Numbered from the stretch's first letter, positions 22,321-44,858 are shown. The stretch is DNA of 64,000 nt from Magallana gigas (GCF_963853765.1 NC_088859.1:31868001-31932000), one strand, 5' to 3'. Translations and numbers: made by a program. The notes: a model not told the origin generated them from the letters alone.

Positions 22321-25300
22321 ATGGAAAATGGTGAATGGTTTAACATGGATCCCATGGGCGGACGAAGAGGACAGGTAATTGAGCAACTTGTGGGTCGATA
22401 TCTCATGAATGACATCAATTTGACAGCTGCTAAAGATGTCAAAGTGTAATCAAAATTTACCATATGAAATAAAAGATTGGCCAAATAATCAATGCCACAC
22501 ATTCTTGTAGATGTAAAACAGAAATTCGCGTATATATCTCATTTGCTAAATACAAAGTCTGTTTAACAATTGCCCACATATTTTGACAGAATGGCATATC
22601 AGTTACAGTAGTATAACACTGTCCGTTTCTCGTTAAACTAAAAATAAGTGAAAAATATTTTTCAGTTGGGGCATGGTACTATTAATTATCCTAACCATCC
22701 ATCATTTCACATTTAAACCTGCCCCAGGTTCTTGTTCCTGTTACTTTTCACTAACATCTTAAATACATGTACACACACATAAAAGCATAACCCAAGATTC
22801 CTCCGACATGCACCCGCTTTTATATTTATGAAACTAGACTAGACTAATCTGTGCATGCATTTATACATTAAAGTGATTTTAAGATTTAATTTTTTTTAAG
22901 CAATCTCTTTACAACGAGTCCAGAAATTCGACGGGATATAGCCTCCATTCTGAGTACCATAAAGACGCTGACCACAGTGAATATCAAGTCCAGGTCAGAG
23001 AATATTGTAGCAGATATCATAACAAGGTTTTGATAAGATGTACTTGTTCAATTTCTTTGTACTGGTAAATCTTACAGATTCTCACAAACTGGTAGATTTT
23101 TATTTACACAAAATACAGAAAATCATCCCACCAAATGTGATCATTATATTACAGATTCATTTTATAAAACTATGTATTTAATTGTTATCTTTAGTACATC
23201 TCTAAGTACACTTTGGAACTAAGATGCTGATGATTATGAAATGTTTTGTTATATGCTAATTAAAGAGACTTGGACACGATTTAGTTCAAAATTCTCGAAG
23301 TTTATTTTTTCATTTTTAATGTCTAAAATGGTCAGTTTGGATGTTTTGAATGCTTTGTCAAAATTTGAAAGTCAAATATCGAGTTACAAGCGAGTTACAG
23401 AGGTGGGAATTCTTTGTTTTGTAAACAAACCCCAGGTCCTGTCATTGTTTACATATGTGTTGTATTACTGCAGTATAAGTTTCAATCTATTGTTGCTTTT
23501 TGTTGTTGATAAAATTATTTATGAACACATTGAATGAGTTTATCTTGTTTCCACAAGTTATTTTATCATAGAAATGGTAATTTCTTTACTTTACATTAAA
23601 TATAAGACTCGAGCTTTGTTTACATAACAACAATTTCTTTCCTCTGTATCTCGCTTGTAACATGACTTCTAACATTCAAATTTTGGTAAATCATTCAAAA
23701 TACACAAATAAACTATTTCATACATAAAAATCAAAAATAGAATTTTCATCTGAAATTGTGTCTAGGTCCCTTTAATGCTTGACAATGGTTCCTTGGATAA
23801 TTATTTAATCTAATTAAAAAAGATACTGATAAACATTGACAAAAATAAAGAGGTTCTTAATACATGTTTAAAGAAAGAAACAAATTCTTGCCACTTTTAA
23901 AAAAATTGTACAACATTACATGTACTATATGTTTAAATGAGATACCAGGTATTTGAACAACATCCATTTTTGAAAATATCAACATTTTTCTAGAGAATGT
24001 TATATTATTATTTCTCTTGGTCACTAAAACATAAAGTTAAAAATCTTTATCTTTTATTGTGTTTATTTGATAGTTTGCTGGCATAATTAAGGAAATTCAA
24101 GTCCATGTAGATATAACAAACAGGACAGAGGTCTTGAGAATGATAGATCAAGGGAAGGTAAGATCTTGTGTTCTCCCTGAAAAACTGATGAGCTTTCTGA
24201 ATCTGTTTTGATGTTTAATATATATACCGATAAAGAATGAATATATAAGATTCCATAAAGGATGTCAGGAGTATATGATTATGTTATCCATTTTCACTAG
24301 TATAAAATGTCTGAAACTGGTTTGTACTATTGTAAAATAGGAAGTTAGGAAATCCATCGCTTTATGACTATGATTTAATTTCCCTCTATGGGCATAGCAA
24401 GTAGCCGTATAATTTACCCCACATTACATGTAAAATTGAATTTCAGCTATATAAATTTAGTTGTGCATTTCAATCAATACAAATTATTTTCAAACCTTAA
24501 TGCAAAATGTTTAAATCTGCTATTGTGACTGCCACGCTAGAGAATTTTTGTAGATGAAGAAGATGATTCCTGCAAAGATAGGCACAGACAGTAATTCTAT
24601 TCTTAGTTTGAGTCGCTATAACATCAAACTGATGCAGGTAGACCATTCCACAGAGGTATGTGTATACCACAGTTTAAGATCAAATGCTAGCTGTCAAAGT
24701 ATTTTATCAGCAAGTCTTTACTGAAAAAAAGAAATCTTTGGCTTATTTTGCAAATCATTTTAATTAATAAGTAGTCAATAAAATGAAAAACAGAATTTAA
24801 TATATCAGTACAATAGAAAATTCAGCCTTTTTATAATGAGTCTCTTTTGTTTGTATCTTATGAATAAGGTTTTTCTTATACATGTATATCATTCATTTCA
24901 GAATCTGATCATTCGAGTTCCTATTCATGAAATAGCAGCAGTTTGTTATGTGAATGACGATGGGATACACATTCTGGCAGTCAAATATGGTAAAGCCAAT
25001 TGTTTAGACCATAATATTTAATAAGTATTTGTTAAGTTTCTCAGGTATTGAAAGGGAAGTATAATACATGTATCTCAAGTTATAAATTTCTGGTTTTTTG
25101 TTGTTGAAAAATTGAGCTTCAGTATTCCCCATTCCTCACTTGCTTTCAAAAAACCTGTCTGCACATTTTCAATTTTTTACTTGAGAAACGAAATATGTCT
25201 TTAATTTTTTTTTTGTCTAGTAAGAAAAAAGTTTTCTAGTTATTTAGTGCATATAAAGGTCCATTTCATAAGCAATCTGTTTCCATTGAGATTTTTCTTG

Positions 25301-28300
25301 CAGGTAATCCTGAGCAGTGCTCACTGCTTGTGCTGTATTGCGATAGCCCAGCTCGAGCAGAGCGGATCTGCTCAGATGTGGCTCAGTGCTTCCAGCTCGT
25401 CTATACAGATGCAGTTGTTCAGCTTCTGGAGGACACGATCGGAAGAGTGGAAACTTCATCTACAGGATCACCCACAATCAATGAAAACAGCCGGAAAATA
25501 TCCTTGTAAGCTTTTTATCAAATTTTTATTCCTACTTTATTAATTCAATGTTTTTTGATCAGTTAGTTAAATCAGAGGGAAAAATATTTGTTGCTAATTT
25601 TCTGTTCAATTTGTCTCCTTGCTTTAGTCATTTAATGTGTCTTATTTAAAGTTATTTAAATCATTCTTTATAAAATAAAAAAATGAAGCTTATTCTGAAT
25701 GTTTTCTTGTGACATTGATTATTTTTTGTGTTTTGAGATTTATTTTGCTTGCATCAGTATTATTGTATTAGCTGATTGTTTATGAAACAATTTGTGTGGA
25801 ACATGTATTCGGTTCACACATGTTGTCTTCTGGAATGAAAATCACATCTACTTCTGGAGTGAAAGTTGTAAAAAAGGCAACAAAGGGGGAGGGGGGTGGA
25901 ATGTCAAATAAAAGTTTAACAAAATTATTCAACTTACAAAAACAAAAATTTATTTTTATATTATGAAAAAGTGATGTGCCTTAATTGAATTGTATGAGTG
26001 CTCAAGCTTTTCCTTTATTTCTTCTTGAAGATTTTTTAACCTTTTAACAGTTCAAAGTATTGATTTCAGTTAGAATATGCACACTTTGATATCCACATAA
26101 TAAACCAATAGACTGTTTGAATGCTTAAGATTTGGCTGTTTGTTACAAACCTTTTCTTCTGTAACATTTTGTATGATATGTAGATAACTTGCATGCTTTA
26201 CAGGGAAGGACTGGACAATCATGGGTAAGATTTTGTGTTGGTTACGACTATCACTTTAATTCCTCAATCTTATTCTATCTTATTCCACATAGAAACAGTT
26301 GTAACTTCCCATAATAATTACCATTTACCGGTATATCCCCCTTTCAATATTATATCATGGACAACCAGTGGTTGGAATCATTCAGAACAATGTATTTATA
26401 CCTGTTATGAACGGACTTCATATTACAGATATTTTTATATTCTCCAAATTTTTATATAGTTCAATTCTTTCACAAGTACTGGTATCTCATTTTCTCCTGT
26501 TTGTTAGATGAGAGATAGAAACAATTTATTCTACTGGCATTTCATTGCATTGAAATACCGGTATTCATTTCAATTATATCTATGAATTTCTATCAAAATC
26601 TTCATGCCTGCCTTAAGTTATCTTTAAATTTTGGAAAAAAATTGATGAATTTATTTTTAGCATTTTGATAACATCTAATGCTTGCAACATGAAAGTTATT
26701 TTTCTCTGTTGAGATGAAACTGTTAAACTGGTCATTGGTGTGATGTATGTTTGAAAATGTCACAGAGCTTGTCTTTTCTTGGTGTTTGGTGGTTTTTTAT
26801 TATCACAATTTAGAAATATAACAAAGGTAAATGCTAACAGGTAAACACATTTAATTTCAAAATAGATTAAAACAGGGTATGGATTTTTATGGATTTTAAC
26901 AGATGTTTTGGAAAAAAAACAACAAACATTATTATGAAGTGTAACATGAACAAGAATAGCGTACCGGTTCTTATTTGTTATTTCTCAGCTGACTCTCCAT
27001 ACATACTAGCACTTATACATATATATTCAATTAATTAACACTGGCATAATTAAGATAAAGTTTGCGGAAAACAAAACTGATGTTATGTATAATATACTGG
27101 TCTTAATTTTAAAATCTTAATTTGAAAAAAATTCTGAAAAATTAGAGCAAACTGTTTTAATTATTCTTTTAGTGGATTTCCCTCAGTAATACCATGTATT
27201 CATTGTATATATCTATTTAAATTGCCAAAATGACTAGGTTTCCATATGCAACATAATCATTGCACGGACGTATTTCCCTGTTGTATAGTGGAATAGATTT
27301 AGATGATTTAGAATATGACTGTAAACGTATAATTTACACTTAAAAGTAAACCTTTTTTGGTTCCTAAAATTTCTTTACATTTTATAACCAAAGGACTAGG
27401 TACAGTTTTAGTCATATTTTGCCCTGTTTTAGAGTGATTTTTAAAACTACCACCAAAAATGGAAATGCAACATTTATTTACACAAAAATACCCATAAACT
27501 AAGAATCTATAAATAGTTACCTGCTTAGACTTTCACTAGTAGGGTAATTGTGACTTCAAAAACAGTGCATTTTCCCGTAATTTTCATAAAACTCAGCAGA
27601 AGACACCAATTCCTTGGAAGTTTTTTGAATAGAAAACTATGTCCGCAGCCATCGCCCACGATGAAACTCACATTATAACTTTATCATGTTAAAACACATA
27701 AAATATATTAATTTTGTTGTGGGCAACGGCTGCGGACACATTTTCCTCTTTAAAAAACTATGAGAAAATGTGCTATTTTTCACCATTTTTGACTAAGTCA
27801 TAGAAATGTGCCAAAATGTTGAGGTCAATTTTATTTTTTGAAACAAGATAAATGTGTATAATTTGGCATTTCATATACACATATGTTCAATATAGTATAT
27901 GTGTATTTTCATGAGATTTAAACAACTTTGGAATTTTAGGGCAAATATTAAAAGAAACTGTACCTTGTTCTTTGACTGCATGTATAAATTCATTAACTTC
28001 AAGGAGTTTTTTGCTTTTCTTTTCTTCAAACAACTGAATTTGTTCTTTTCTTAATTTTTGGAGAGGTTCACTTGCATGTCAGGCATGCAGTAAATGATTT
28101 CCTATTACCTATTTCCAATTTTTAAGATGGTTACAAGCATACTACATGTATCAGTTAAAGACTTCTTTAATGCGTCTCTTTGACAGCTTTTCTCAGTCAC
28201 AACCAAACCTATCAGATCGACACAACCGAGACAAAAGATCCCGTAGCCTAGCAACCAGTGACGCCAGCAACCAAAGCATTCAAGCTGAACTCTTGAGGTC

Positions 28301-31300
28301 TTACCTGGAGCAGGTAATCTTAATCAATGCATGCTTATATTTACTTGTACCATCAATTTCTGTAGAGTCTTATCTTGGGATGGTACAGGTACATGTGTAC
28401 TATAAAGGTATGATTTTTATCCGAGTTGTGTGTATTCCATCCCTAGGCATGGCAAGGGAATAGAAAATACAACAAATAAGACAACAATCTATTGCAAGTT
28501 CAAACCCAGTTTTTATGTATTTCTAAGAGATTGAATTTTTTTGAAATGATAAAGATATGTACTACCGGATGTAATATCATTGCATGAAAATCATTGTGTT
28601 GTCATGATATGGCAGTGTAATGAAAATCTATTGAATAAGTCATATATAGAAGAAACAATAAATCATAATGTATAATAAACTACATATTCATGAATTGCTG
28701 ATGTATTAAGACACATATTAAGATAAATTAACATATTGTACATTAAATTAATGGATTAAGAAACAAATACCAATAGCAATATTGAGAGACTACATATTTA
28801 GAAGAATGAAATTACCTTTATATAAATGTAAAGTATTGGTACATATGCATGTAAATGTGCATTGCGAAAGGATTGGGTCTCCTCACTATCCCTTGAATAT
28901 TTCTGTTTACTTTAGCTGCGGAGCAAGTTTACAGTGGATGAGCTGGCCAAATTCTCCACACTGCTAAAGCAGATCAACGACCCATCCCCCAGGAGCCACA
29001 AAGATCTTCTGGCAGTGTTCCAAGAGGTGTTCCAGTTGTATGGAAACGAGAGGAAGAATCTTCTAGCTGGTAACTCACTATTTAAGAAGCTCTTTCAAAC
29101 AAATTAAAAAAATTCCATGGAAAAATTTGTTGTACTTCTTTGATAAGCTAGTTAAAAACCTTTTTCTTAATGTTGTAAAGTCAAATGAAATTTTTAGGCG
29201 GGCTTTGCTGAGAGCAAAGTGTTGGCTGTAGGCAGGCATCTTGTCAATGTTACTATAGCACAACTTCATAAGTAAAAAAAAAACAACTAAAGAGCATCAA
29301 AAAGAGAGAGATAGATTGCCAGTCTTATTACACAATACGCATTATGACATATCACAAAAGCCTGGCTCTCAGTACTTCAATACTTTGATTCTTCATTAAA
29401 AGTCATAGTTTTATTTTCATGGTTGGTGGGGTTTACCGGTATGTTTTAAGTTTATGAAATAAGCTATTATTCTTAAAAATAAACAAACAATAGATCAGCA
29501 TTTCCTTATGTTTTCAAATTTTTATCTGCAGAAAGGCATGTTCTTGACAGCATTGAAATAATTGAATTTTTCTTCTTCAACCTGAGGCAAATAAATTTAA
29601 TAAATGATAAATCATGATATAATTTACTCTGTATGTCTTCCCTGTTACAGGTTTGTGTCCCTTTATCTATGAGAAACATTATGCAAATTTCTTGGATTTC
29701 CTGAAGAAGCAAGGCATTGCGATAGACAATGGAACTCTATCGAGTCGTCACAGTTTTCCTCGTAATTACACGTAAGTTCAGGCAGTGGGGGAATATTGTT
29801 ACAGGTGTAAAGGTACATGAGGCCTCAGTATTATTATAGACTTAATGTATACTAGTGTACAGCCCCTGTTTTATGTACTGCGGTATTTGTCACTACTCCA
29901 GTGTTTGAGAGAAATGGAGCAGGTCAGAAACACTTGACTTCTGAATACTTTGGAATCATTGATAATCTTGGTGGCTCAATTTTTGTGGATTTCATAGGTA
30001 CATCTTACCCACGAGTTAAATCTCTCATTGACCGAATTAAGAAACATAGTCTTTATTATTGTACACAGAAGCAAATCCACAATGTTTCATCCCATCGAAC
30101 CTATCGAAAAATAGACAATCAACGAAAATTGGCCCCCAAGATTAAATAATTACACAGTATCTAATTACTGACTTTTCGTCTTCTTCCACATAGCTAGCAG
30201 TAAAATTATATGCTACTTCATTGTCAGTACACTACATGTACATATATTTTGCAGTTTGGAAATAATGGTAATAAAAAAACAAAAATATATCTATTAAATA
30301 TCAGTTAAGCATTGTTGCAATTTGGGATGAATTAAAACTCCGAAATCGATATACATGTATCTCCAAACAAGTGGTGTGACTTATATTGGATTGATTCCTG
30401 GAGATTTGTTTACAGTCCCTCCCTCAGTGACTGCTCCACAATTATTGATGATGACCTGGATAGTGAATTGGAGTTTTTGGCCTCTGCCTCCTCTGTAATG
30501 GTAAACCCTGTACCGCCTTACACCAGAGATGTGCTTACACAGTTAGCTCCCCTGCAGATGCACTTTTTGTCACTGTTTGATGCGCAATGTTTGATACAAT
30601 GTACACTTTTCAGAGTCAGTCTACACATGCATCCTCTGAAAATCTGAGGAAAAATTTGATGAATTTGATTTGATTTTAGGCAGTGGGTCTGAAACAAAAC
30701 TCTATGGAAACTAAATTTTGGTTGATAATTCAGATAAGCTTTCTGAATGTGTACGTTGCAATCCAAAATGCAGAGGGCAGTTGGTCAATGCTTTTAGGCT
30801 CAACCAAGTGACCCTATTATACATTTATATGCTAGGTTTCGGGCTGATTATAAATCTGGATATATATAATGGTTGCATTGTTGGAATCCACAGGATGTGT
30901 GATCTTTTTTGGATTCTGACAATGAAGACGTTGGTCCAATTTGTGGTTGCATATTGAAGGTTTACTAATCATCGTGTTACAGTCATTTGTTCTTATGCCT
31001 TAACTCTTGTAAGCTTTATAGAATGCCCTGCTGTGAAAATGTAAGAAATATGAAAAAGTGGTGTAAAATGCACTTTTAATACTGCTCCATAGAAATTTGC
31101 TTTGATTATGCTGAGAGGCAGCACTGGTGATTGGTAACATGAAGTAGGAAGATAAATTCTTAAGATCTAGCAATGGAGTAAAATAATAATCTGTGGTCTG
31201 TCTGACTCTGTCAAAATATACACACTTGCACCCTAGTCATTTTGAAATACAATGAACTAAACAGAAAAGAAAATGTACTGGTAAATTATCAATTTATATG

Positions 31301-31603
31301 TAGGAAAGATATCAATTAAAAAATTTAGCAGTAGACTTAGTGACAGTGATGTTTTTCAGGATTTTAATTCTTAAATGATATTCAGTATTCTTATTCTGGG
31401 AATCATTTACTGTAGTGAATTTCAATGTGTTAGTCATTCATACCTTGATTATTGTTATTTTTTCTTGCAGACGTTCCGTGAGCGACATGAACACTAACGA
31501 CCAGAGCGATATCGATAGTGTACTGGAGGGGATATCTACACAACTGGCACAAATCGACAGCAATATTGGCGATGTAAACACGTACCTCAACTATCCTTCA
31601 TGA
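22321..31603 (+). CDS. CCM2: Cerebral cavernous malformations 2 protein (malcavernin) homolog: PTB domain + harmonin-homology domain
   Basis: Exons 22321-22374, 22901-22993, 24074-24157, 24554-24655, 24902-24989, 25304-25505, 26204-26224 (microexon), 28187-28313, 28916-29069, 29651-29771, 31471-31603; all phase-compatible. PTB: ILSLSRYNIKL...LIIRVPIHEIAAVCYVNDDGIHILAVK...CSLLVLYCDS...CFQLVYTD. HHD: ELLRSYLEQLRSKFTVDELAKFSTLLKQ...LYGNERKNLLAGLCPFIYEKH. First exon less certain. Confidence 0.9.
23264..23771. mobile_element. TTAA-flanked Kolobok-like MITE in CCM2 intron 2
   Basis: TTAA|AGAGACTTGGACACGATT ... AATTGTGTCTAGGTCCCT|TTAA; imperfect TIRs with AG termini. Confidence 0.7.
27389..27974. 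mobile_element. MITE in CCM2 intron 7
   Basis: Imperfect TIR CAAAGGACTAGGTACAGTTT / AAACTGTACCTTGTTCTTTG; internal inverted pair GTCCGCAGCC / GGCTGCGGAC. Confidence 0.6.
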
Positions 31604-33422
31604 TGTTTTATAAATCTTCTCTCTTTGTCTCTTGGAAAGCAAATATTACTGTGTTGCCAGTCACAAGTATATCTATCAAGCTTGGATTGACCTAAAGTGA
31701 TGATGGCTTGCATTATCTGATAAAATCATTCTTGTCTCAATGGTAATGTGTAAATGATACCAAATCCCTAGTGTCTACAGCACATCTAAACCAAACAATA
31801 AAAAACCGAAGTAAAAGAGGAATTTTCCCAGAACCAAGTCATTGTACCTTAAGAGCCATCTGATGCAGGCATCAGACAAACTGAAAGGAACATAAACCGT
31901 TTAATTATTAAAGATTGTAGAAACATGAATTTTACATTACGTCGTCATCGCTTTTATCATTTTATGAACAAAATTACATGTAGTATGCACCAGATGGAAA
32001 TGCTGGATCGTTTCTGTATACCCCAGAATCAAAGCGAAACAGCTGCTTCTTGCAGAGAATTTACATTGATGCATCTAGCTAGTAGGCCAGGTTTGCTCAT
32101 TCCATTCCAGTCACTGCTTCCTGGTAGGTTGGTTGCCCTTTGGGGAACATATTCCCTGGATTAACACAAGATTTATGCAAGAAGCTGATAAATGGATTGA
32201 ATATTTGCCTTTTTAAAAGTGCCTTAGTGTGATTTTTTGTTGTGTTTGTTTTGTTACATTTTTATACGTGATGACAATATATACATGAACATGCAAGGTT
32301 GTTATTTATTCTGTCTAGTACAGTTTGTAGATTATTTTGCAAATATATTAGCGTTAGCATGCAAGTTATTCTTAGCAAGTTTTGTACATACATTCATCAA
32401 AAAAATATCTGTGATTTATATGCAATGTTTGTAAAATATGTGATTACTTGTCTCTACATCTTCTGGCATTTTTGTACTGAGTAATATTGGTGTATAGAGA
32501 TTCTTACTTAATATTGACCATCTTGTTCAAATACTGGTGTCTGCATGTTAATTGTAGGATCATCAACGGAGGCCAATTTTTGTAAATTGCCAGTTTATTA
32601 AAACTTCGTTGGGACATAATTTTGTGGATAAACTTTTATGAATAATTTATAAAGAAAAGTTCCATTATTTTCTGTCAATGTTAAATTCATGGGTGAAGGT
32701 TATCCAAGAAATCTATGGAAATGGAGCCAACGTGAACGTTAATAATTTTACAGCAATCTGAAACATTGATACAAGCATTTTCTATTCAAATGTATACTTT
32801 GCTTCCAAATGACCCATTCTCCAGTGAATACTATAAATTGCCACCAATAAAATACAACTGCTTCAAATGATTTATTACAATGTGCACTTTTATGTACATG
32901 TATTTATAAAATAAATTCAAAGAAAAACAAAACAAAAAATGTGTTTCTATGTTAACATTTATTTATATAAAAAACATGGACATTAAAACTGAGTGAACAG
33001 TGTATTTAAATCTAATTGAAACCAACCCCCCCCCCCCCCCCAAATTATCAAGTTCTAATAAGAAAAGTAGAGAAAATTCTGTTTAATTTTAATTTAAAAG
33101 AGTTAAATAATAGTGTCTTTGCTACATATGGGTAAACTTAACTTTCACTTTACAAAGATCTGTATTAATATCGAAGAACATGTTTTATGGAAGTTCAGGT
33201 ACATGTCAACTGTGCCTTTCCTCAGAATTGGTCCAAATCATTCCTTGCTTGCCCATTTTGACATAGGGCATCCTCCCTGGCTGGCAGTTATAACTCCAGG
33301 TGCTGTGCTTGAGTTTGACGCCACTTCATCCTCAGTATTATGGACATGGGAATCTTTGGCACGAGAGCCGATGTCATAATTCATTGAGTATTGTGGCTTG
33401 AACTGTCACCATTGTGTTCAAT

Positions 33423-34636
33423 TCAAGATTTATCAGTTATAGCATCGAATAGTCTTCGCACTAATTGGCAAACATCATTTGCAAGTTCCTATTTTTTTTA
33501 TATAAAAAAAAGAAAGAATTATTTTATTTTTTGTATGAATTTCTTGTACAACTACTGCCTTTTTAAAGTATAATAACAAATTTTAAAAAGATTTTTATTC
33601 CATAAACGCACATGCCCTGGCAGTTGGATATACAGTATATAGTCTAGGAGTTACAATGATGTTAGGTTATATTTAACAAACCTCTGTATTGCACTGGAAG
33701 ACATAGCACTGAAACACCTCCTTGTTGACCTGCAGTTGACCTATTTTCAGAGCAATGTTTGGTCCCCCAAACCCATCCTCGTACTGCACTACCTCAGCTA
33801 TGGTGTGGAGAGGGTGTCGCTGCAGTATCTCCTACAAAACAAAATGACTTCTGTGTATTTCAGAGTTCAGAGTCGGGTTCCAGGGATAATAATGATAGTG
33901 ACAAGTTTGTGTGTGCAGATCCCAGTTCAGTTGTGTGAGGATTAGGATCTGATGCTTAGTATACAAATATGAAACCATTGACCAGAGTGTTTTACTGTTG
34001 CTAAATTTCAAATTCAGCTTCACTGTATGTAATTTTCCATTTTGAAATTGAACTCTGTTGCAGTGTTAAATTTTACATTCTGATTTACCTTGGTTCTTTT
34101 ATTTTGGACTTGTATTCCATGCCGCGAAACAGTGAAGAAGACTTGGTCTTTCTCCCCAACAGTAATGGGAATGTCTCCAGCAATCTAAGTCACAAAATAC
34201 AATTATTCAAATATGCTTACTTTGTAATACAGTAATACACTGTAATTTGTTTAAAATATTGGTTAAAATTAACTTTTTGAGAATTGCAAAAACGGTACAT
34301 TGGTATAACAAACAAAAAATACTAAAAATGTATTGTATTAAAAATTAATGTTGAACATAGACTACAAAAGTTAAAATCATGCATGCCTTTTGTAAGTTGT
34401 AACCATGCAATGTATCTTTACAAATATTACCCTATTACTAAGTGACAAACTAAATTTGATATATGATTTAGTCAGATTTGAATATATACCTGAGCTTCCT
34501 CTATTCGATCTATCAGCTGGGCCTCTGTATCTCTCTTCTGTGAATTACCCATTGCTATCTTTTCAATGTTACCCAAATAGAAAACATCAAATGTCTTCTT
34601 ATGCATTAAAATATTCTCCTTTTCTTTAAGTTTCAT
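33423..34636 (-). CDS. ITGB1BP1: Integrin beta-1-binding protein 1 (ICAP-1) homolog, PTB domain, at least 152 aa
   Basis: Exons (minus) 34636-34490, 34184-34089, 33831-33682, 33488-33423, all phase 0. Translation MKLKEKENILMHKKTFDVFYLGNIEKIAMGNSQKRDTEAQLIDRIEEAQ|IAGDIPITVGEKDQVFFTVSRHGIQVQNKRTK|EILQRHPLHTIAEVVQYEDGFGGPNIALKIG...YVFQCNTE|ELANDVCQLVRRLFDAITDKS* parallels recalled human ICAP-1 segments (FRIKYVGAIEKL, LINYIDVAQ, VSKYGIKV, DVLHRHALY, YDDGLG, VYQCNS, QAICKVLSTAFD). Not in the ORF track because the exons are short. N-terminus may extend further. Confidence 0.82.
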
Positions 34637-35593
34637 TGTGTTTTCATTAATCCCAGTCTAAAATCGAAATAGATAATAAATACATGTATTAAAATGTCAC
34701 CTAAATTGCCTCCTTTCAAAGGAAAGAGAAATGAGTGTTCAAATGATTAGAATTAAATAAAGTACAGTAAACCATGGTTACAGCAAACATAATGAATATA
34801 CTTTTACAGCAAAGTCAGCTTTGTTTCCGATACAAGATTTTTGCGAAGTGTAGATTGATTGATTAGAGAAATCTTCATGATTTCCAAGGATAAAAGCTAT
34901 TATAAGGGAGTGGTCTGAATTTCTAGCTTACATTGACATATCAACATGATCAATTTATTAGATTTGAAGTTTTATCATTAACAAGGAAAAATAAAAAAAA
35001 ACATAGTGAGTAAATTTACATAACTTAGCCCTATTGTTGACAAAACTTCAGACTTAGATCAATGCCTGAATTGTATTCCAGATGTCAAGTTCAACCGTGT
35101 TTAACTGGGAAGTTTGCGGGTAGATAAAAAAAATTCCCGTGTGCTTATCAAGAATTATTTAAGTTAACACTGTTACGAGATAGGGCATTTTAATAATTAA
35201 ACAGGTGATTAATAATTAACAAAGATACTGTTGACAGCTTTTATAGTATGTCTTCATGTCAAATAGGCATCACAGGTGGTGATCATCAGTGACTTGCTAT
35301 ATCAGGCTTTTGACCATACTAGAAACCAATAATCAATTAAAAATAATTTATACTTACATTTAATTTTAAATTCTTTCTTGGAAACATATCAACGCAAACT
35401 TTCTCTTTAGCATGTTAGTAAAACCTGCCACACTAAACTGATGAATTCCGGACTACTATTTCATAAAAAAAAATCTTTCAACTATTTACACGCCTTTTTA
35501 GTGAATGTAATAGTTTGCAAAAATAAAGGGTATTTTTCCTTATTCAAAAACATAAAAGTATAAACAAGAAAACACAAAGTAAAATAAAAATAC

Positions 35594-35766: not shown

Positions 35767-38700
35767 ATGAGCTGCGAAGACGAAGTTATGAAGATCGGAA
35801 AGAAGTTGGAAAAGATGATTTTAAACAACAGTGCCGTGAGTATTCATGCGTGTTCAAGTTGTCTCCCGCTGGTGAGGGGGTGGGGGGTGGTCGAACGAAA
35901 TTAATGTATTATGCTAGATAAATTAAGCTTATGATATTAAGTGTTGAAACTGCTCATATATATTACGAGTTTGAAATGTGATGATTAAAGCCTAAAATCT
36001 GTAAAAAATAGTTATGTAGGTTAACGTAAAAACAAGCTTATTTTTATTTTGTAAATATTTCACATAGTTTCAGCAGTGATTTGACAGTAACAAAATACAG
36101 TTATGTCATATGAAAAGAAGAGGTAAGCCATTAAAACAGTTTGTATTGCAATATGGTAGATTATTTTTTAATGGTGACATTCATTTTTTAGGACCATGGT
36201 GGAGCCGATGATTTACTGAATAAATTGAAGGATATGCCAATGACTCTTACAGTTCTGCAGGTATTGATGATGAAGCTTGCATTGTAACTGTTAGATAAAA
36301 AGATGAAACATGTATAGATAATAGAAAATCATTTTGATGTGTCTACCTTGATAATAGATCATCAACAATTTGTTTGATTTTCCAAATCAATAGAAAACTA
36401 GAATAGGAATGACAGTCAACAACTTCAGAAAGGCTGCATCTAAAGATGAGTTGGTAGTGCTCTCAAAGACACTGATCAAGAGTTGGAAAAAACTTCTCTC
36501 CAGTGGTAAGCCCAAAACTATATGTTGTAGTATGTAGTGCATTGATTGTATAGTGGTTTGTTTAGAACATGTTATTAGCTATAGAAACGTAATGTCAAGC
36601 ATTATGGAGTCACAATAATGTTATACAAAAGAGCGAATAATTCATGATTGTATAGTAATTTATTTAGAACTTATTATTAGTCATATAGATTTAACGTCCA
36701 ACATTATGATGTCACAATAGTATTATACAAAAGCACAAAAGAGTGAATAATCCATGATTATATAGTAATTTATTTAGAACTTATTATTAGTCATATAAAT
36801 TTAACGTCCAACATTATGATGTCACAATAGTATTATACAAAATCACAGATAATCCATGACGCTCTATATCTATCAGTTATGTTCAAAACAGTAGAATACC
36901 CTTTATGAATAAATCTTTTGATGAAAGCAAATTTAATATACCTATAATTATATGCATATCTAAAATGGTCTACATAGTTTTCAAATGTCTAAAATTAACT
37001 GAGAATATATTTAGTGATCACCTAAGAAGAACACTCCTTTTTACCAAAAATTTTGAAAACAATGTATCTTAGAGATTTTATTAATAAAAGATATCATTTG
37101 TTAGACTCAACGCCATCAAAATCAGACAAGAAGGAGAAAGAAAAGTCCTCTAACTCTCCAGAACAGATGGACAGTCCTTCAGAAATGATGGACGTCAAAG
37201 ATAGCCAGGGTAGTGAGCCAGGGAAAACCTTAATGAGACAAGACTCTGAGGCATCCATTACCAATGACCCTGTCAGAATCAAGTGTCGAGAGCTTCTTGC
37301 TACCTCACTTGTACTTGATGAGGAAGTTAAAGGTTTCATTGTTTTCTTCAAACATATAGAATGTGTATTCTATGGTTATTTAAGGAGACCGATTTGAGGT
37401 TTTTTTTGCGGAAAACTACATTAACAAAACCCATGATTTTTTAATCGTATGTATTTCACACAAACTCTAGTTTATTTGAGAAGTTTCAAGAAAATTGACC
37501 ATTTGGTTCTTTTTAGGGGCCATCTCAAAATACAGGTACATTTACTCAAGGAGTATATATAGGAAATTGTCATTTTTCGCAATGCGAAGCAGATTAAAAA
37601 AATACTTCAGTAGATTTTTTTTCTCATATTATAATATGTGATTACTAAAATCATTTACTACCTTATATGTAAAAAATACTAAATGCTACCGTTTGGTTTT
37701 TAATGAGGGCCATCTCAAAAATATCAAAATGCACCAAATGTTGCTATATATTTGGAGTATAACAAATGTAAATTGGTAAAATGGATTTATTCAAAAATTA
37801 AGAAAAATACCCCCAAGGGTAGCATTTTTCTGTGTATAGATTTTCAACGGCTTATGATTTATAATTTTTCTTGTATGTTATTTCTTATAACACACTCCTA
37901 CAAAGCATCATTTTATCATAATGTTATAAAAGCGCAATGGCATCGCTCACCTACTGTAGAACAGAAAATTGTTTAAAAAATAAAATGTTCCTTAAAAATC
38001 TAAATAGTTTTATATGTATTTAGTTTATTATGTTAAATTTTATAAATGATATAAAAAAAAGAATCATTAAACGTATGAATACACTGTATCTTATTAGAAT
38101 GCGCAAAAACGTGTGCAATGAAAACTAAAGTCAGCCTCCTTAAATTTGATAAAATTTTGAACTTAAGTCTTTACTGTGATACATGCAAGTTGAGGTATAT
38201 TGAAGAATTGATGTACTGGTAATATATGTAATTAATTTTCTCTATAATTATTCAACTTTCTTTTTTGATGAACAGTCCGCATTCCCAATGCTCAGTGTCC
38301 TAAAGAACTTGCAGCGAAGATTGAAGATTGTATCCTTAAAAAACAAAATAGAAAAGTTGGATAATTGAAGTTTGCTTTGTGCACTATTAACTCTAATTTA
38401 TTTTGAAATTTTGACAAAAAGGTAGGTGATATGACTGAAACTTCCATAGTTATATTAATGTAATTTGATAGATAGAAGATGTTTTGAAGCAATATTAGAT
38501 ATTTCAAAAATTTACTTCTGAATTGAACACAAAGCATTGTGGCCCCCTTTGACCCAAGGCCTTTTGTTATTTCATCCTTAACTTTTACACTAGCCATACA
38601 TTTGGAGTTTAAAAACACAGATCAGAAATACAAAGCTAGAATAAGAAGCAGAGTGGCCAATCTGAAAGACAAAAAAAATCCCAAATTGAAAGAAGGAGTC

Positions 38701-42275: not shown

Positions 42276-44858
42276 TTTTTTAGCTCACCTGAACCGAAGG
42301 TTCAAGTGAGCTTTTCTGATCACCCGTTGTCCGTCGTCCGTCCGTCCGTCTGTCTGTCTGTCCGTCCGTCTGTAAACTTTTCACATTTTCAACTTCTTCT
42401 CAAAAACCACTAGGCCAAATTTAACCAAATTTGGTACAAAGCATCCTTATGGAAAGGGGATTATAAATTGTTAAAATAAAGGGCACAGCCCTTTTCAAAA
42501 GGGAGATAATTGCGAAACAGTGAGTATAGGGTGCATGTCTTTAAAAATCTTCTTCTCAAGAACCACTGCACCAGAAATGCCAATATTTACACAAAAGCTT
42601 GTATATATAGTGAAGATTCTAAATTGTAAAAATCGTGACCCTCGGACCAAAACTGGGGCCCCAGGCGGGGTTCAAAGTTTAACATAGAAATACATAGGAA
42701 AATGTTTAAAAAATCTTCTTCTCAAGAACCACTGCACCAGAAATGCCAATATTTACACAAAAGCTTGTATATATAGTGAAGATTCTAAATTGTAAAAATC
42801 GTGACCCTCGGACCAAAACTGGGGCCCCAGGCAGGGTTCAAAGTTTAACATATATAGAAATACATAGGAAAATGTTTAAAAAATCTTCTTCTCAAGAACC
42901 ACTGCACCAGAAATGCCAATATTTACACAAAAGCTTGTATACATAGTGAAGATTCTAAATTGTAAAAATCGTGACCCTCGGACCAAAACTGGGGCCCCAG
43001 GCGGGGTTCAAAGTTTAACATAGAAATACATAGGAAAATGTTTAAAAAATCTTCTTCTCAAGAACCACTGCACCAGGAATGCCAATATTTACACAAAAGC
43101 TTGTATACAAAGTGAAGATTCTAAATTGTAAAAATCATGACCGTCGGACCAAAACTGGGGCCCCAGGCGGGGTTCAAAGTTTAACATAGAAATACATAGG
43201 AAAATGTTTTAAAAATCTTCTTCTCAAGAACCACTGCACCAGAAATGCCAATATTTACACAAAGGCTTGTATATATAGTGAAGATTCTAAATTGTAAAAA
43301 TCGTGACCCTCGGACCAAAACTGGGGCCCCAGGCGGGGTTCAAAGTTTAACATAGAAATACATAGGAAAATGTTTAAAAAATCTTCTTCTCAAGAACCAC
43401 TGCACCAGAAATGCCAATATTTACACAAAAGCTTGTATGTATAATGAAGATTCTAAATTGTAAAAATCGTGACCCTCGGACCAAAACTGGGGCCCCAGGC
43501 GGGGATCAAAATTTAACATAGAACTACATATGAAAAATGTTTAAAAATTTTCTTCTCAAGAACCACTTCACCAAAAATGCCAATACATACACAAAAGGTT
43601 GTATATATAGTGAAGATTGAAAAAATCGTGACCCCCGAACAAAAGTGGGGCCCCAGGAGGGGTTTAGATTTTAACATATATAGGAAAATGTTTTAAAATC
43701 TTCTCAAGAACCATCGTGCAACTGTTTGGGATATTACTATGCATACATGTACATCCTTAAATAATGTAGATTCAAAAAATTGTAACTCCCGGACAATTGA
43801 TGGGCACCAAGAGGGGTTCAAAATTTAAACATTTTAAAAAACAAAGGAAAAGTTTAAAAATTTTCTTCTCAAGAACTACAATGTTTTAGTTAATGGAATA
43901 TCTATGCATGCATCCTTCGCTTATGTAGATTCATAATTCGTAAAATCGTGACCCCCGGACCAATAATGGGGCCCCAAGATGGGGTCAAAGTTTATTATAG
44001 AAATATAAAGGTAACAGGTTAAAAAATCTTCTTCTCGAAAACTACAATGCTTCAATTTGTGAGATTACTATCATGCATACAACCTTGGATAATGAAGGTT
44101 CGACAGTTTTAAATTAGTGACCCCTGGACTAATACTAGGGACCCAAGATGGGTTTAAAGTTAAATGTAGAAGTACCGGTATATATGGAAAATGTTTAAAA
44201 ATCTTCTTTTCGAGAACTACAATGCATCAATTTGTCAGATAACTACGTAAGCACCCTCAGATAGTGTAGATTCGAAATTATAAAAGCCGTGACCTCAATC
44301 TAATACTGAGGCCCCAAGAGGTGTTCAAAGTTTAGCGTAGAAATATAGAGGGAAAATGTTGAAAAATCTTTTTCTAGGGAACTATAATGCTTCAGCTTGT
44401 GAGATAACTATTCAAGCATCCTTAAATAATGTAAACTTTAGCACTGAACTAATACTGTGGCCCCAAAAGGGGTTCAAAGTTTAACATAGAAAGATATATT
44501 GAAAATGTTTTTAAAAAGTTCTTCTCGAGAACTATAATGCTACAGTTTGTGAGATTACTATGCAAGGATCCTCAAATTGTGTAAACTCTAATGTAGTGGA
44601 ACCAAGAGTTATCTTTCTTAATGTTCTGTACAGTCTGAGAGTTATTCCTCTTGAAGTGGAACTCTTCTACGTTCAGTTTTTCAGGTTGTGTACGTGCGGT
44701 CCCACCGCAGTGCTACACATTTTCATTCCTATGTTACTATTTATGTTGTTCAAGCCAACCATAAACCTCGGACCATTACTGGGTCCCCAGAAAGGGGTTC
44801 AATGTTTAAAATAGAAAAAGCATATGCTACGAAATGTAATGTTACAAGGAACTGCTGT

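Follow-up and report, generated by a model that had tools for sequence, protein, structure and literature searches.

Work on cerebral cavernous malformation and on integrin regulation has treated CCM2 and ICAP-1 as unrelated partners of KRIT1, and the human genes ITGB1BP1 and CCM2 lie on different chromosomes. The closest described proteins are human ICAP-1/ITGB1BP1 (PDB 4dx8, 4dx9 and 4jif), in which a Ser/Thr-rich N-terminal region precedes one PID-type PTB domain, and human CCM2/malcavernin (4wj7) with its paralogue CCM2L, which have an N-terminal PTB domain and a C-terminal harmonin-homology domain. By profile score, the next closest PTB domain to that of ICAP-1 is that of GULP1/CED-6 (PDB 6itu). 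As regards gene order, ancient metazoan microsynteny blocks are known in which adjacency and orientation have survived splits between phyla more than 600 million years old. Our literature search found no paper on linkage or paralogy of ICAP-1 and CCM2.

Here we describe a 64,000-nucleotide stretch of the genome of the oyster Magallana gigas (the window), in which the two genes are tail-to-tail neighbours and are transcribed convergently. The oyster ICAP-1 domain is of the PID type, with the same length and the same conserved blocks as the human one; the protein is shorter, with about 30 residues before the domain where human ICAP-1 has its Ser/Thr-rich region. Oyster CCM2 has the same two domains as its human counterpart (377 aa versus 444), with a shorter insert within the PTB domain. 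The pair resembles the ancient microsynteny blocks in its persistence and differs from them in that the neighbours are probably paralogues whose products would bind the same partner protein.

Structure and transcription of the two genes

The plus strand carries a CCM2 orthologue of nine coding exons (ATG 22321, stop 31601-31603, mRNA end at about 32961), all joined through canonical GT..AG sites into one open frame. The minus strand carries an ICAP-1/ITGB1BP1 orthologue of five exons (ATG 35387, stop 33423-33425, mRNA end at about 33047), which is expressed and whose spliced open frame encodes 169 aa with a single PTB domain. The features are as follows.

22321-22443, plus strand: CCM2 coding exon 1, with the ATG at 22321 and a phase-0 donor; from sequence and frame, in frame with all later exons
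24074-24157, plus strand: CCM2 exon 2, in AG..GT context, encoding the PTB domain's first strand and helix
24554-24655, plus strand: CCM2 exon 3, 34 aa between introns a and b, both ends phase 0
24902-24989, plus strand: CCM2 exon 4 (NLIIRVPIHEIA...), sole PDB match malcavernin 4wj7 (E 4.4e-6)
25304-25505, plus strand: CCM2 exon 5, encoding the C-terminal portion of the PTB domain, sole PDB match malcavernin 4wj7 (E 1.9e-3)
28187-28313, plus strand: CCM2 exon 6, linker, from splice context and frame
28916-29069, plus strand: CCM2 exon 7, matching Pfam CCM2_C and encoding the first half of the harmonin-homology domain
29651-29771, plus strand: CCM2 exon 8, flanked by RNA joints at either end and encoding the second half of the harmonin-homology domain
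30417-30499, plus strand: optional CCM2 cassette exon, joints 29771 to 30416 and 30499 to 31470, in RNA run X5 only
31471-32961, plus strand: CCM2 last exon, coding up to the stop at 31601-31603 and 3' UTR after it; AATAAA at 32910, RNA contig end at 32961
32962-33046, no strand: spacer of about 85 bases separating the 3' ends of the two mRNAs, with 16 consecutive C, from the depth table and contig ends
33047-33488, minus strand: ICAP-1 last exon, coding 33488-33426, stop 33423-33425, 3' UTR to about 33047; AATAAA 33082-33093
33682-33831, minus strand: ICAP-1 exon 4 (EILQRHPLHTIA...CNTE), between introns b and c, both ends phase 0, from RNA joints
34089-34184, minus strand: ICAP-1 exon 3, 32 aa, bounded by introns a and b, both ends phase 0, from RNA joints
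34490-34657, minus strand: ICAP-1 exon 2, acceptor 34657 and donor 34490, from an RNA joint and a contig piece spanning 34490-34657
35358-35387, minus strand: ICAP-1 first coding exon (MFPRKNLKLN), 30 bases from the ATG at 35387, with GTAAGT directly after
36409-36537, plus strand: one exon of a gene for TFIIS (TCEA) that lies head to head with ICAP-1; Med26/TFIIS N-terminal domain in Pfam at E 4.5e-4

RNA-seq joints back the last two introns of CCM2 (29069/29651 and 29771/31471). The former appears as a joint from 29068/9 to 29650/1, and the latter was found in four RNA runs as well as in strand-specific depth and contig pieces. The junctions of exons 2, 3 and 4 are supported by the sequence itself and by their conservation in the CCM2 genes of two sponges rather than by RNA. 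Exon 2 starts directly 5' of FAG and ends with ...MIDQGK at intron a in phase 0, and its counterpart is also present in GULP, Numb, sponge ICAP-1 and spongillid CCM2. Exon 3 has a homologous exon of 31-32 aa in both sponge CCM2 genes, and the 3' end of exon 4 is a CCM2-specific phase-1 intron common to Oscarella and spongillid CCM2.

The N-terminal CCM2-type PTB domain is thus accompanied by a C-terminal harmonin-homology domain (PF16545), the combination that characterizes CCM2/malcavernin. The Pfam match to the latter comes from one exon, half of the domain, and at E 0.002 and 18.7 bits lies below the whole-protein cut-off; exon 7 alone gave no significant match in PDB. In tblastn, the oyster exons matched the PF16545-annotated CCM2 genes of Haliotis (8e-8 for exon 8, and 6e-5) and Lingula (1e-5), and exon 7 was among the exons matching the annotated genes of both. 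One CCM2 locus was seen in the oyster. A genome-wide Pfam search with CCM2_C gave zero matches and missed the known locus too, so it is too insensitive to exclude a second CCM2 gene and is silent on the question.

On the minus strand, RNA-seq joints back the ICAP-1 introns 33488/33682, 33831/34089 and 34184/34490. The last exon was located by tblastn with invertebrate ICAP-1 proteins, by a joint from 33487/8 to 33681/2 and by a contig end at 33047. The first coding exon was recognized from RNA contig X5, whose loose end at 34657 is exactly identical to 35358-35387; the methionine at 34636 was accordingly rejected as the ICAP-1 start in favour of this upstream 30-base exon. A minus-strand frame at 31433-31597 was also rejected as the last ICAP-1 exon: it coincides with the plus-strand exon in which the CCM2 coding sequence ends, and RNA joints and homologues place the end of ICAP-1 at 33423. 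Exon 2 ends with ...RIEEAQ at intron a, and exon 3 has an equivalent in the ICAP-1 of six other animals.

The first-pass annotation had placed the two genes tail to tail with stop codons 1.8 kb apart. Exon matches, RNA joints and strand-specific depth agree with that arrangement, and 1819 bases (1.82 kb) lie between the two stops. Plus-strand RNA was detected as far as about 32.9 kb and minus-strand RNA from about 33.0 kb. Weak minus-strand read depth extends back to about 32.55 kb, which may indicate that some ICAP-1 transcripts overlap the CCM2 3' UTR. The TFIIS flank is conserved, the same gene being found upstream of ICAP-1 in Haliotis, Lingula and Capitella.

Linkage across animals and its retention

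The adjacency is not unique to the oyster. Of the ten taxa with genomic context, which were lophotrochozoans, a priapulid and sponges, the pair was adjacent in six: the oyster, Haliotis, Lingula, Owenia, Oscarella and a spongillid. The arrangement is tail to tail in the gastropod Haliotis (abalone; 6.8 kb between annotated gene ranges, which start at the ATG), in the brachiopod Lingula (5.7 kb between annotated ranges), in the annelid Owenia (7.2 kb, likewise) and in the homoscleromorph sponge Oscarella (109 bp, likewise). In the freshwater spongillid demosponge the genes are head to tail on the same strand, the CCM2 ATG lying 273 bp beyond the ICAP-1 stop; the evidence is a metagenome scaffold of 4.8 kb and a Logan contig, which possibly come from the same sample. 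Adjacency was not found within 10 kb in Lineus, Capitella, Priapulus or Bugula, all four of which keep ICAP-1.

Duplication is the most likely origin of the CCM2/ICAP-1 pair, and we consider it probable that one PID-domain gene was duplicated locally before the common ancestor of sponges and bilaterians, its linkage being retained in many lineages. The ancestral gene would already have carried introns a and b from an older PID ancestor, and a local duplication preceding the last common ancestor of sponges and bilaterians would have given rise to CCM2 and ICAP-1. The copies would then have remained neighbours in many lineages, tail to tail in most and head to tail in the freshwater demosponge, and by analogy with the vertebrate proteins both products would dock on KRIT1 NPx[YF] motifs, ICAP-1 also docking on the integrin beta tail. 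The first-pass annotation had proposed an ancient inverted tandem duplication. BLASTP, trees, the AU test and linkage speak for the local duplication; as to "inverted", the original order could equally have been direct and the inversion later. A pair of paralogues whose linkage has survived from sponges to molluscs would be a clean case of its kind. In the human genome, ITGB1BP1 (2p25.1), CCM2L (20q11.21) and TCEA3 (1p36.12) are located close to ID2/E2F6, ID1/E2F1 and ID3/E2F2, in what may be a single four-fold paralogy region; this would fit a linked trio broken up by differential loss following the vertebrate genome duplications.

Our guess is that retention of the linkage mostly reflects neutral persistence of a very compact pair. 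The linkage might instead be held by selection, with shared 3' regulatory sequence or sense-antisense overlap coupling the dosage of two KRIT1 adaptors. This is unlikely, though it has several observations on its side: the oyster 3' ends are about 90 bp apart with weak minus-strand depth running into the CCM2 3' UTR, the annotated gene ranges of Oscarella are similarly close, and the orientation is preserved across phyla in the oyster, Haliotis, Lingula, Owenia and Oscarella. However, Haliotis, Lingula and Owenia have 5.7-7.2 kb between the annotated ranges, the demosponge pair is oriented differently, and the four lineages that lack the linkage have kept ICAP-1 nonetheless. A stronger form, to which we give rather little weight, would make the pair a selected regulatory unit whose 3' ends, abutting or overlapping since the first animals, couple expression and set the adaptor ratio in cis. 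Under that form, the ICAP-1:CCM2 ratio on neighbouring KRIT1 NPx[YF] sites would tune integrin activation. Invertebrates in which the pair is compact, such as the oyster and Oscarella, could serve for testing whether the linkage has regulatory meaning.

Relationship of the PTB domains and their introns

In sequence comparisons, the PTB domains of CCM2 and ICAP-1 are mutual closest relatives within the PID/PTB sample. In BLASTP, the CCM2 domain scored 39-64 bits against ICAP-1 and at most 24 bits against GULP, Numb, X11 and two other PID domains. Three maximum-likelihood trees of this short domain (about 138 alignment columns), with successively larger sampling, had a branch that separated ICAP-1 and CCM2 together from eight other oyster PID domains (support 93/96, 100/99 and 96/95). 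This outgroup of eight domains came from one genome, with three of them partial, and was drawn without Dab, ARH, Shc, Fe65 or the non-PID PTB families. The CCM2 sequences in the trees were assembled from the loci L007 and L043 and the window, and the oyster CCM2 domain clustered with both sponge CCM2 genes (97/91). GULP fell outside the ICAP-1 and CCM2 group in all three trees, and an AU test rejected a grouping of ICAP-1 with GULP to the exclusion of CCM2 (p 0.004). In addition, precomputed Pfam hits of the ICAP-1 family PF10480 fall on the CCM2 proteins of Haliotis and Oscarella, and both Oscarella proteins have RQG.LPW in the loop that follows the helix.

These results could also arise if the adjacency were old and the genes were not sisters, two distinct PID genes having come to lie side by side and owing their similarity to a tree artefact or to convergence, in the latter case on the shared KRIT1 NPx[YF] ligand. 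The ICAP-1 profile scores human GULP1 (36.6 bits) no lower than human CCM2 (36.0 bits), the introns that the two genes have in common are not specific to them, and CCM2 has a short PTB domain on a long branch set against a small outgroup sample. Nevertheless, we judge such an origin improbable. The grouping was stable in all three trees, the best alternative tried was the one rejected by the AU test, and the similarity between CCM2 and ICAP-1 is domain-wide, including the helix and the loop outside the peptide groove. Furthermore, the demosponge pair, head to tail and only 273 bp apart, is the expected trace of a tandem duplication.

The first-pass annotation had taken two coincident phase-0 introns, the first at the MIDQGK/RIEEAQ junction, as evidence for the duplication. 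The positions are real: introns a and b are phase 0 in both CCM2 and ICAP-1 and occupy identical alignment columns, 46 and 83. Intron b, however, has the same phase and column in oyster GULP/CED-6, Numb and X11/Mint. Intron a has the same column in GULP and lies one column off in Numb and six off in X11, in an ambiguously aligned helix. Intron c was found in ICAP-1, spongillid CCM2, GULP, Numb and X11, and no gene-structure feature exclusive to ICAP-1 and CCM2 was found, since a, b and c also occur in those three other genes. Compared with ICAP-1 directly, oyster GULP, which lies on another chromosome (C5), has phase-0 introns at a and b in the same columns and at c within two columns. A further GULP intron, directly before FLG, was seen among ICAP-1 genes only in Oscarella.

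The presence of introns a and b in GULP, Numb and X11 means that they were inherited from an older PID ancestor; judged by alignment position, they are ancestral PID-domain introns and are not specific to a link between CCM2 and ICAP-1. Introns common to other PID genes cannot carry an argument for sister genes, and the shared positions speak for common descent of the domain, not for sisterhood of CCM2 and ICAP-1. The annotation had itself named introns common to most PTB families as a finding that would count against it, and for these three genes that is largely what was seen. Its conclusions hold because of BLASTP, the trees and the adjacency, and not because of the introns.

If CCM2 and ICAP-1 are sister copies, then KRIT1, a scaffold with several NPx[YF] motifs, probably started out with one adaptor, whose role was split by duplication. 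This would also provide a rationale for comparing the binding specificities of the two proteins. The genes themselves are ordinary and are annotated already.

ICAP-1 family membership and the KRIT1 module

The oyster protein fits the ICAP-1/ITGB1BP1 family in its matches to the family model and to a human structure and in being a small protein with a short N-terminal tail and one PTB domain. Exon 4 alone matches Pfam PF10480 (ICAP-1_inte_bdg; E 5e-5) and, in PDB, human ICAP-1 (4dx8; E 1.1e-4), and orthologues range from 142 to 238 aa. That the minus-strand gene belongs to another PTB family or is a pseudogene is already refuted by these results and those that follow: the single-exon Pfam score (23.9 bits) is slightly below the whole-protein cut-off of 25, but five spliced, expressed exons give an intact open frame, every match to it in an exhaustive search was an ICAP-1-like protein, a profile of those invertebrate proteins finds human ICAP-1 over the whole domain (E 6.5e-33), the gene is sister to a Haliotis protein named "integrin beta-1-binding protein 1-like" by NCBI (97/96), and it is the single PF10480 locus of the oyster genome.

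The identification made in the first-pass annotation is therefore upheld. Invertebrate ICAP-1 has already been annotated by NCBI in many species, and ICAP-1 in a mollusc is not new. Word-indexed protein searches for ICAP-1 gave lophotrochozoan, priapulid, nematode and sponge matches only; they missed vertebrate ICAP-1 too, so the blanks in deuterostomes and cnidarians reflect a limit of the tool and not absence.

The same annotation had envisaged a KRIT1-ICAP1-CCM2-integrin module in molluscs. A KRIT1-ICAP1-CCM2 module is plausible from motifs and structure prediction, and its integrin part would follow by analogy with vertebrate ICAP-1. ICAP-1 is known to bind the first NPxY of KRIT1 and the distal NPxY in the tail of integrin beta-1, and CCM2 to bind MEKK3 as well as NPxF motifs 2 and 3 of KRIT1. 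Oyster KRIT1 has a NUDIX_5 match, and one of its exons carries NPAF and NPLF ahead of ankyrin repeats, the motifs being at the expected place. Binding of oyster ICAP-1 and CCM2 to the KRIT1 NPx[YF] motifs is inferred from the vertebrate proteins. The core of the complex, represented by ICAP-1 and CCM2 in sponges and by KRIT1 as well in the oyster, is older than blood vessels.

A complex predicted across species, between a piece of oyster KRIT1 and the abalone ICAP-1 PTB domain, scored 0.82, and the best of three controls scored 0.00; 51 of 78 solved complexes and 2 of 108 mismatched pairs attained the mark used for this score. The prediction may echo memory of the solved human complex. Runs shared at least 62% of contacts, with a partner pLDDT of at least 82. 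In the predicted complex, the NPAF stretch lies in the canonical groove between the strand and the C-terminal helix, the same groove in which the NPA[YF] motif docks in human ICAP-1.

Two RNA-supported genes ending tail to tail

The nine plus-strand exons of CCM2 (malcavernin) join through canonical GT..AG sites into a single open frame of 377 aa. Exon 4 matched the human malcavernin/CCM2 PTB domain (PDB 4wj7, E 4.4e-6), which was also the sole PDB match of exon 5 (E 1.9e-3), and exon 7 matched Pfam CCM2_C, the harmonin-homology domain (E 0.002). By tblastn, exons 7 and 8 matched Haliotis and Lingula genes whose products bear CCM2_C. On the minus strand, five exons of ICAP-1 (ITGB1BP1) encode a 169-aa protein, and its exon 4 matched both Pfam ICAP-1_inte_bdg (PF10480; E 5e-5) and human ICAP-1 (PDB 4dx8; E 1.1e-4). 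An exhaustive HMMER search with exon 4 returned 41 proteins, all ICAP-1-like, and a profile built from eleven of them matched human ICAP-1 at E 6.5e-33. In the oyster genome (564 Mb, 29 contigs), PF10480 was matched nowhere but at the ICAP-1 gene of the window, which spans G000:C7:31868001-31932000.

Coding features of CCM2 and ICAP-1 in the window
22321 (ATG) to 31601-31603 (stop), plus strand: CCM2 coding span, nine exons joined
from 31471, plus strand: CCM2 last exon, with the real stop and 1.36 kb of 3' UTR (RNA joint)
35358-35387, minus strand: ICAP-1 first coding exon, MFPRKNLKLN, followed by GTAAGT (RNA contig match)

RNA evidence over 29000-34900 came from two stranded poly(A) runs and two RNA-contig sets. 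RNA joints were seen for the CCM2 introns 29069|29651 and 29771|31471, the latter meaning that the apparent stop at 29773 is intronic, and for the ICAP-1 introns 33488|33682, 33831|34089 and 34184|34490. The RNA contig ending at 34657 carries 186 additional bases, the first 30 of which are identical to 35358-35387. For CCM2, an AATAAA at 32910 precedes the contig end at 32961 by 45 bases, and the ICAP-1 contig ends at 33047, directly past two minus-strand AATAAA at 33082-33093. With RNA-backed last exons, the stop codons lie 1819 bases apart, in agreement with the roughly 1.8 kb of the first-pass annotation. The main poly(A) ends are separated by about 85-90 bases, and weak minus-strand read depth extending to about 32.55 kb means that the two transcripts may overlap to some extent.

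Several smaller features were seen here. A run of 16 C (33027-33042), where loose RNA read ends occur, falls within the 85-base spacer separating the poly(A) ends. Contigs of one RNA run contain an extra 83-base plus-strand exon between CCM2 exons 8 and 9 (30417-30499; joints 29771>30416 and 30499>31470). The two contig sets also share a joint that connects 30259 with 32892 through 18 foreign letters; a structural variant or contig chimerism may account for it. Elsewhere, a coding-like tandem repeat on the plus strand at 42500-43600 ('...MFKKSSSQEPLHQKCQYLH...'; period about 166-170 bases, at least 7 copies) surfaced among tblastn noise matches.

Linkage and kinship of CCM2 and ICAP-1

Genomic neighbourhoods were taken from exact look-ups of ICAP-1 proteins, and tail-to-tail spacing was measured from one annotated gene range to the other, each range beginning at the ATG.

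CCM2/ICAP-1 arrangement in other animals
Haliotis cracherodii (gastropod): tail to tail, 6.8 kb
Lingula anatina (brachiopod): tail to tail, 5.7 kb
Owenia fusiformis (annelid): tail to tail, 7.2 kb
Oscarella lobularis (homoscleromorph sponge): tail to tail, 109 bp
spongillid demosponge scaffold: head to tail on the same strand, 273 bp between the ICAP-1 stop and the CCM2 ATG

The spongillid pair lies on a 4.8 kb scaffold, and the ICAP-1 encoded there shares 76% identity with Ephydatia muelleri Em0023g52a when gaps caused by read-through introns are counted. Lineus, Capitella, Priapulus and Bugula had no CCM2 within 10 kb of their ICAP-1 gene. The adjacency, which if unique to the oyster would have spoken against the ancient duplication proposed in the first-pass annotation, is retained in six of the ten taxa whose genomic context was available, ranging over sponges and four lophotrochozoan phyla. 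The conserved block comprises three genes, since TFIIS lies head to head with ICAP-1 not only in the oyster but also in Haliotis, Lingula and Capitella. An oyster TFIIS (TCEA) exon lies at 36409-36537 on the plus strand, and roughly 1 kb separates the start of the gene from that of ICAP-1.

The PTB domains of the two proteins also resemble each other. Oyster CCM2 scored 64 bits by BLASTP against Oscarella ICAP-1 and 39 against oyster ICAP-1, as opposed to at most 21 against GULP, Numb, X11 and two further PID (PTB superfamily) domains; Oscarella CCM2 scored 50 bits against Oscarella ICAP-1 and at most 24 against the same set. In maximum-likelihood trees (LG+C20), the branch uniting ICAP-1 and CCM2 was supported at 93/96 with five outgroups, 100/99 with eight and 96/95 after demosponge sequences were added, for a short domain and with outgroups drawn from one genome, several PTB families being left out. 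A topology joining ICAP-1 with GULP and keeping CCM2 out was rejected (25.8 log-likelihood units worse, AU p 0.004). The ICAP-1 Pfam model is among the precomputed matches on Haliotis and Oscarella CCM2 proteins. Against the sisterhood, the ICAP-1 profile gave human GULP1 and human CCM2 equally high scores.

The simplest history of the pair would be a single local duplication earlier than the sponge-bilaterian split. The local duplication of the first-pass annotation is thereby supported; the first arrangement may have been direct or, as that annotation had it, inverted, tail to tail being the more widespread state. We found no paper on CCM2/ICAP-1 linkage or on sisterhood of their PTB domains, and we read the genes as products of a local duplication that have stayed in microsynteny, a modest yet clean evolutionary result.

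Two departures were noted at single loci. In Lingula (locus L005), the stretch between ICAP-1 and CCM2 holds the last coding exon of ICAP-1 twice at the peptide level, the two copies (16632 and 18812) being 2.2 kb apart. In the bryozoan Bugula neritina, ICAP-1 is intronless, being one uninterrupted exon (locus L040, 10001-10612) apart from CCM2, and looks like a retrocopy in place of the original gene.

Introns of the PTB domain

Intron a sits at the helix end, b precedes HPLH by five residues, and c follows the 'YVFQC..E' strand. Introns a and b are phase 0 in both CCM2 and ICAP-1 and flank a small exon of 34 and 32 aa, respectively. ICAP-1 has phase-0 introns a, b and c in Oscarella, Haliotis, Lingula, Lineus, Capitella and Priapulus as well; CCM2 has a and b in Oscarella and the spongillid sponge, the latter retaining c too. 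Searched with Pfam PID, the oyster genome yielded 18 exon matches, from which the domain-coding exons of three genes were rebuilt.

Exons between introns a and b in other oyster PID genes
GULP/CED-6, contig C5, about 14.066 Mb: 33-aa phase-0/0 exon; the next exon ends at c
Numb, contig C6, about 34.967 Mb: 26-aa exon
X11/Mint, contig C6, about 35.49 Mb: 29-aa exon

In one L-INS-i alignment, all eight sequences had intron b in column 83 and six of them had intron a in column 46; intron a was at column 47 in Numb and at column 52 in X11, where the helix alignment is ambiguous, and intron c fell in columns 139-141. A fourth intron, immediately 5' of the first-strand [FY]-x-G, is common to oyster and spongillid CCM2, Oscarella ICAP-1, GULP and Numb. 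Further oyster PID genes do without these introns, two being single-exon over the domain and one having no intron b. The coincidence of two phase-0 introns reported in the first-pass annotation is therefore real but not particular to the pair: because GULP, Numb and X11 have the same introns, it marks an old PID gene structure rather than any particular tie between CCM2 and ICAP-1.

Introns have also been lost. Spongillid ICAP-1 (locus L043, 998-1675) has neither a nor b and retains a 57-base in-frame intron c, which the gene caller read through, and Owenia ICAP-1 (locus L038, 13621-13818) has no intron c.

ICAP-1 in invertebrates and its predicted KRIT1 partner

Invertebrate ICAP-1 is already known, since NCBI names it in molluscs, brachiopods, nemerteans, one priapulid and one sponge, and we found it also in the nematode Plectus sambesii (P0035) and a bryozoan. 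According to the first-pass annotation, ICAP-1 is not known from fly or worm (C. elegans); given Plectus and the priapulid, that absence, if true, would be lineage loss within Ecdysozoa.

The oyster also has a KRIT1 gene, detected by a NUDIX_5 match on contig C2 in an exon reading ...NNPAF... and ...NPLF..., followed by ankyrin-repeat exons. In this exon (G000:C2:20228200-20228606; locus L041), NPAF and NPLF are 45 residues apart. A cross-species complex of its product (open-frame residues 34-112) with the abalone ICAP-1 PTB domain was predicted with a score of 0.82, the best of three controls reaching 0.00; 51 of 78 solved complexes attained the mark used for this score, as did 2 of 108 mismatched pairs. 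Contact agreement between runs was at least 62% and partner pLDDT at least 82. The prediction, which places the NPAF stretch in the canonical strand and helix groove of abalone ICAP-1, shows a modelled likeness to the solved human complex rather than binding.
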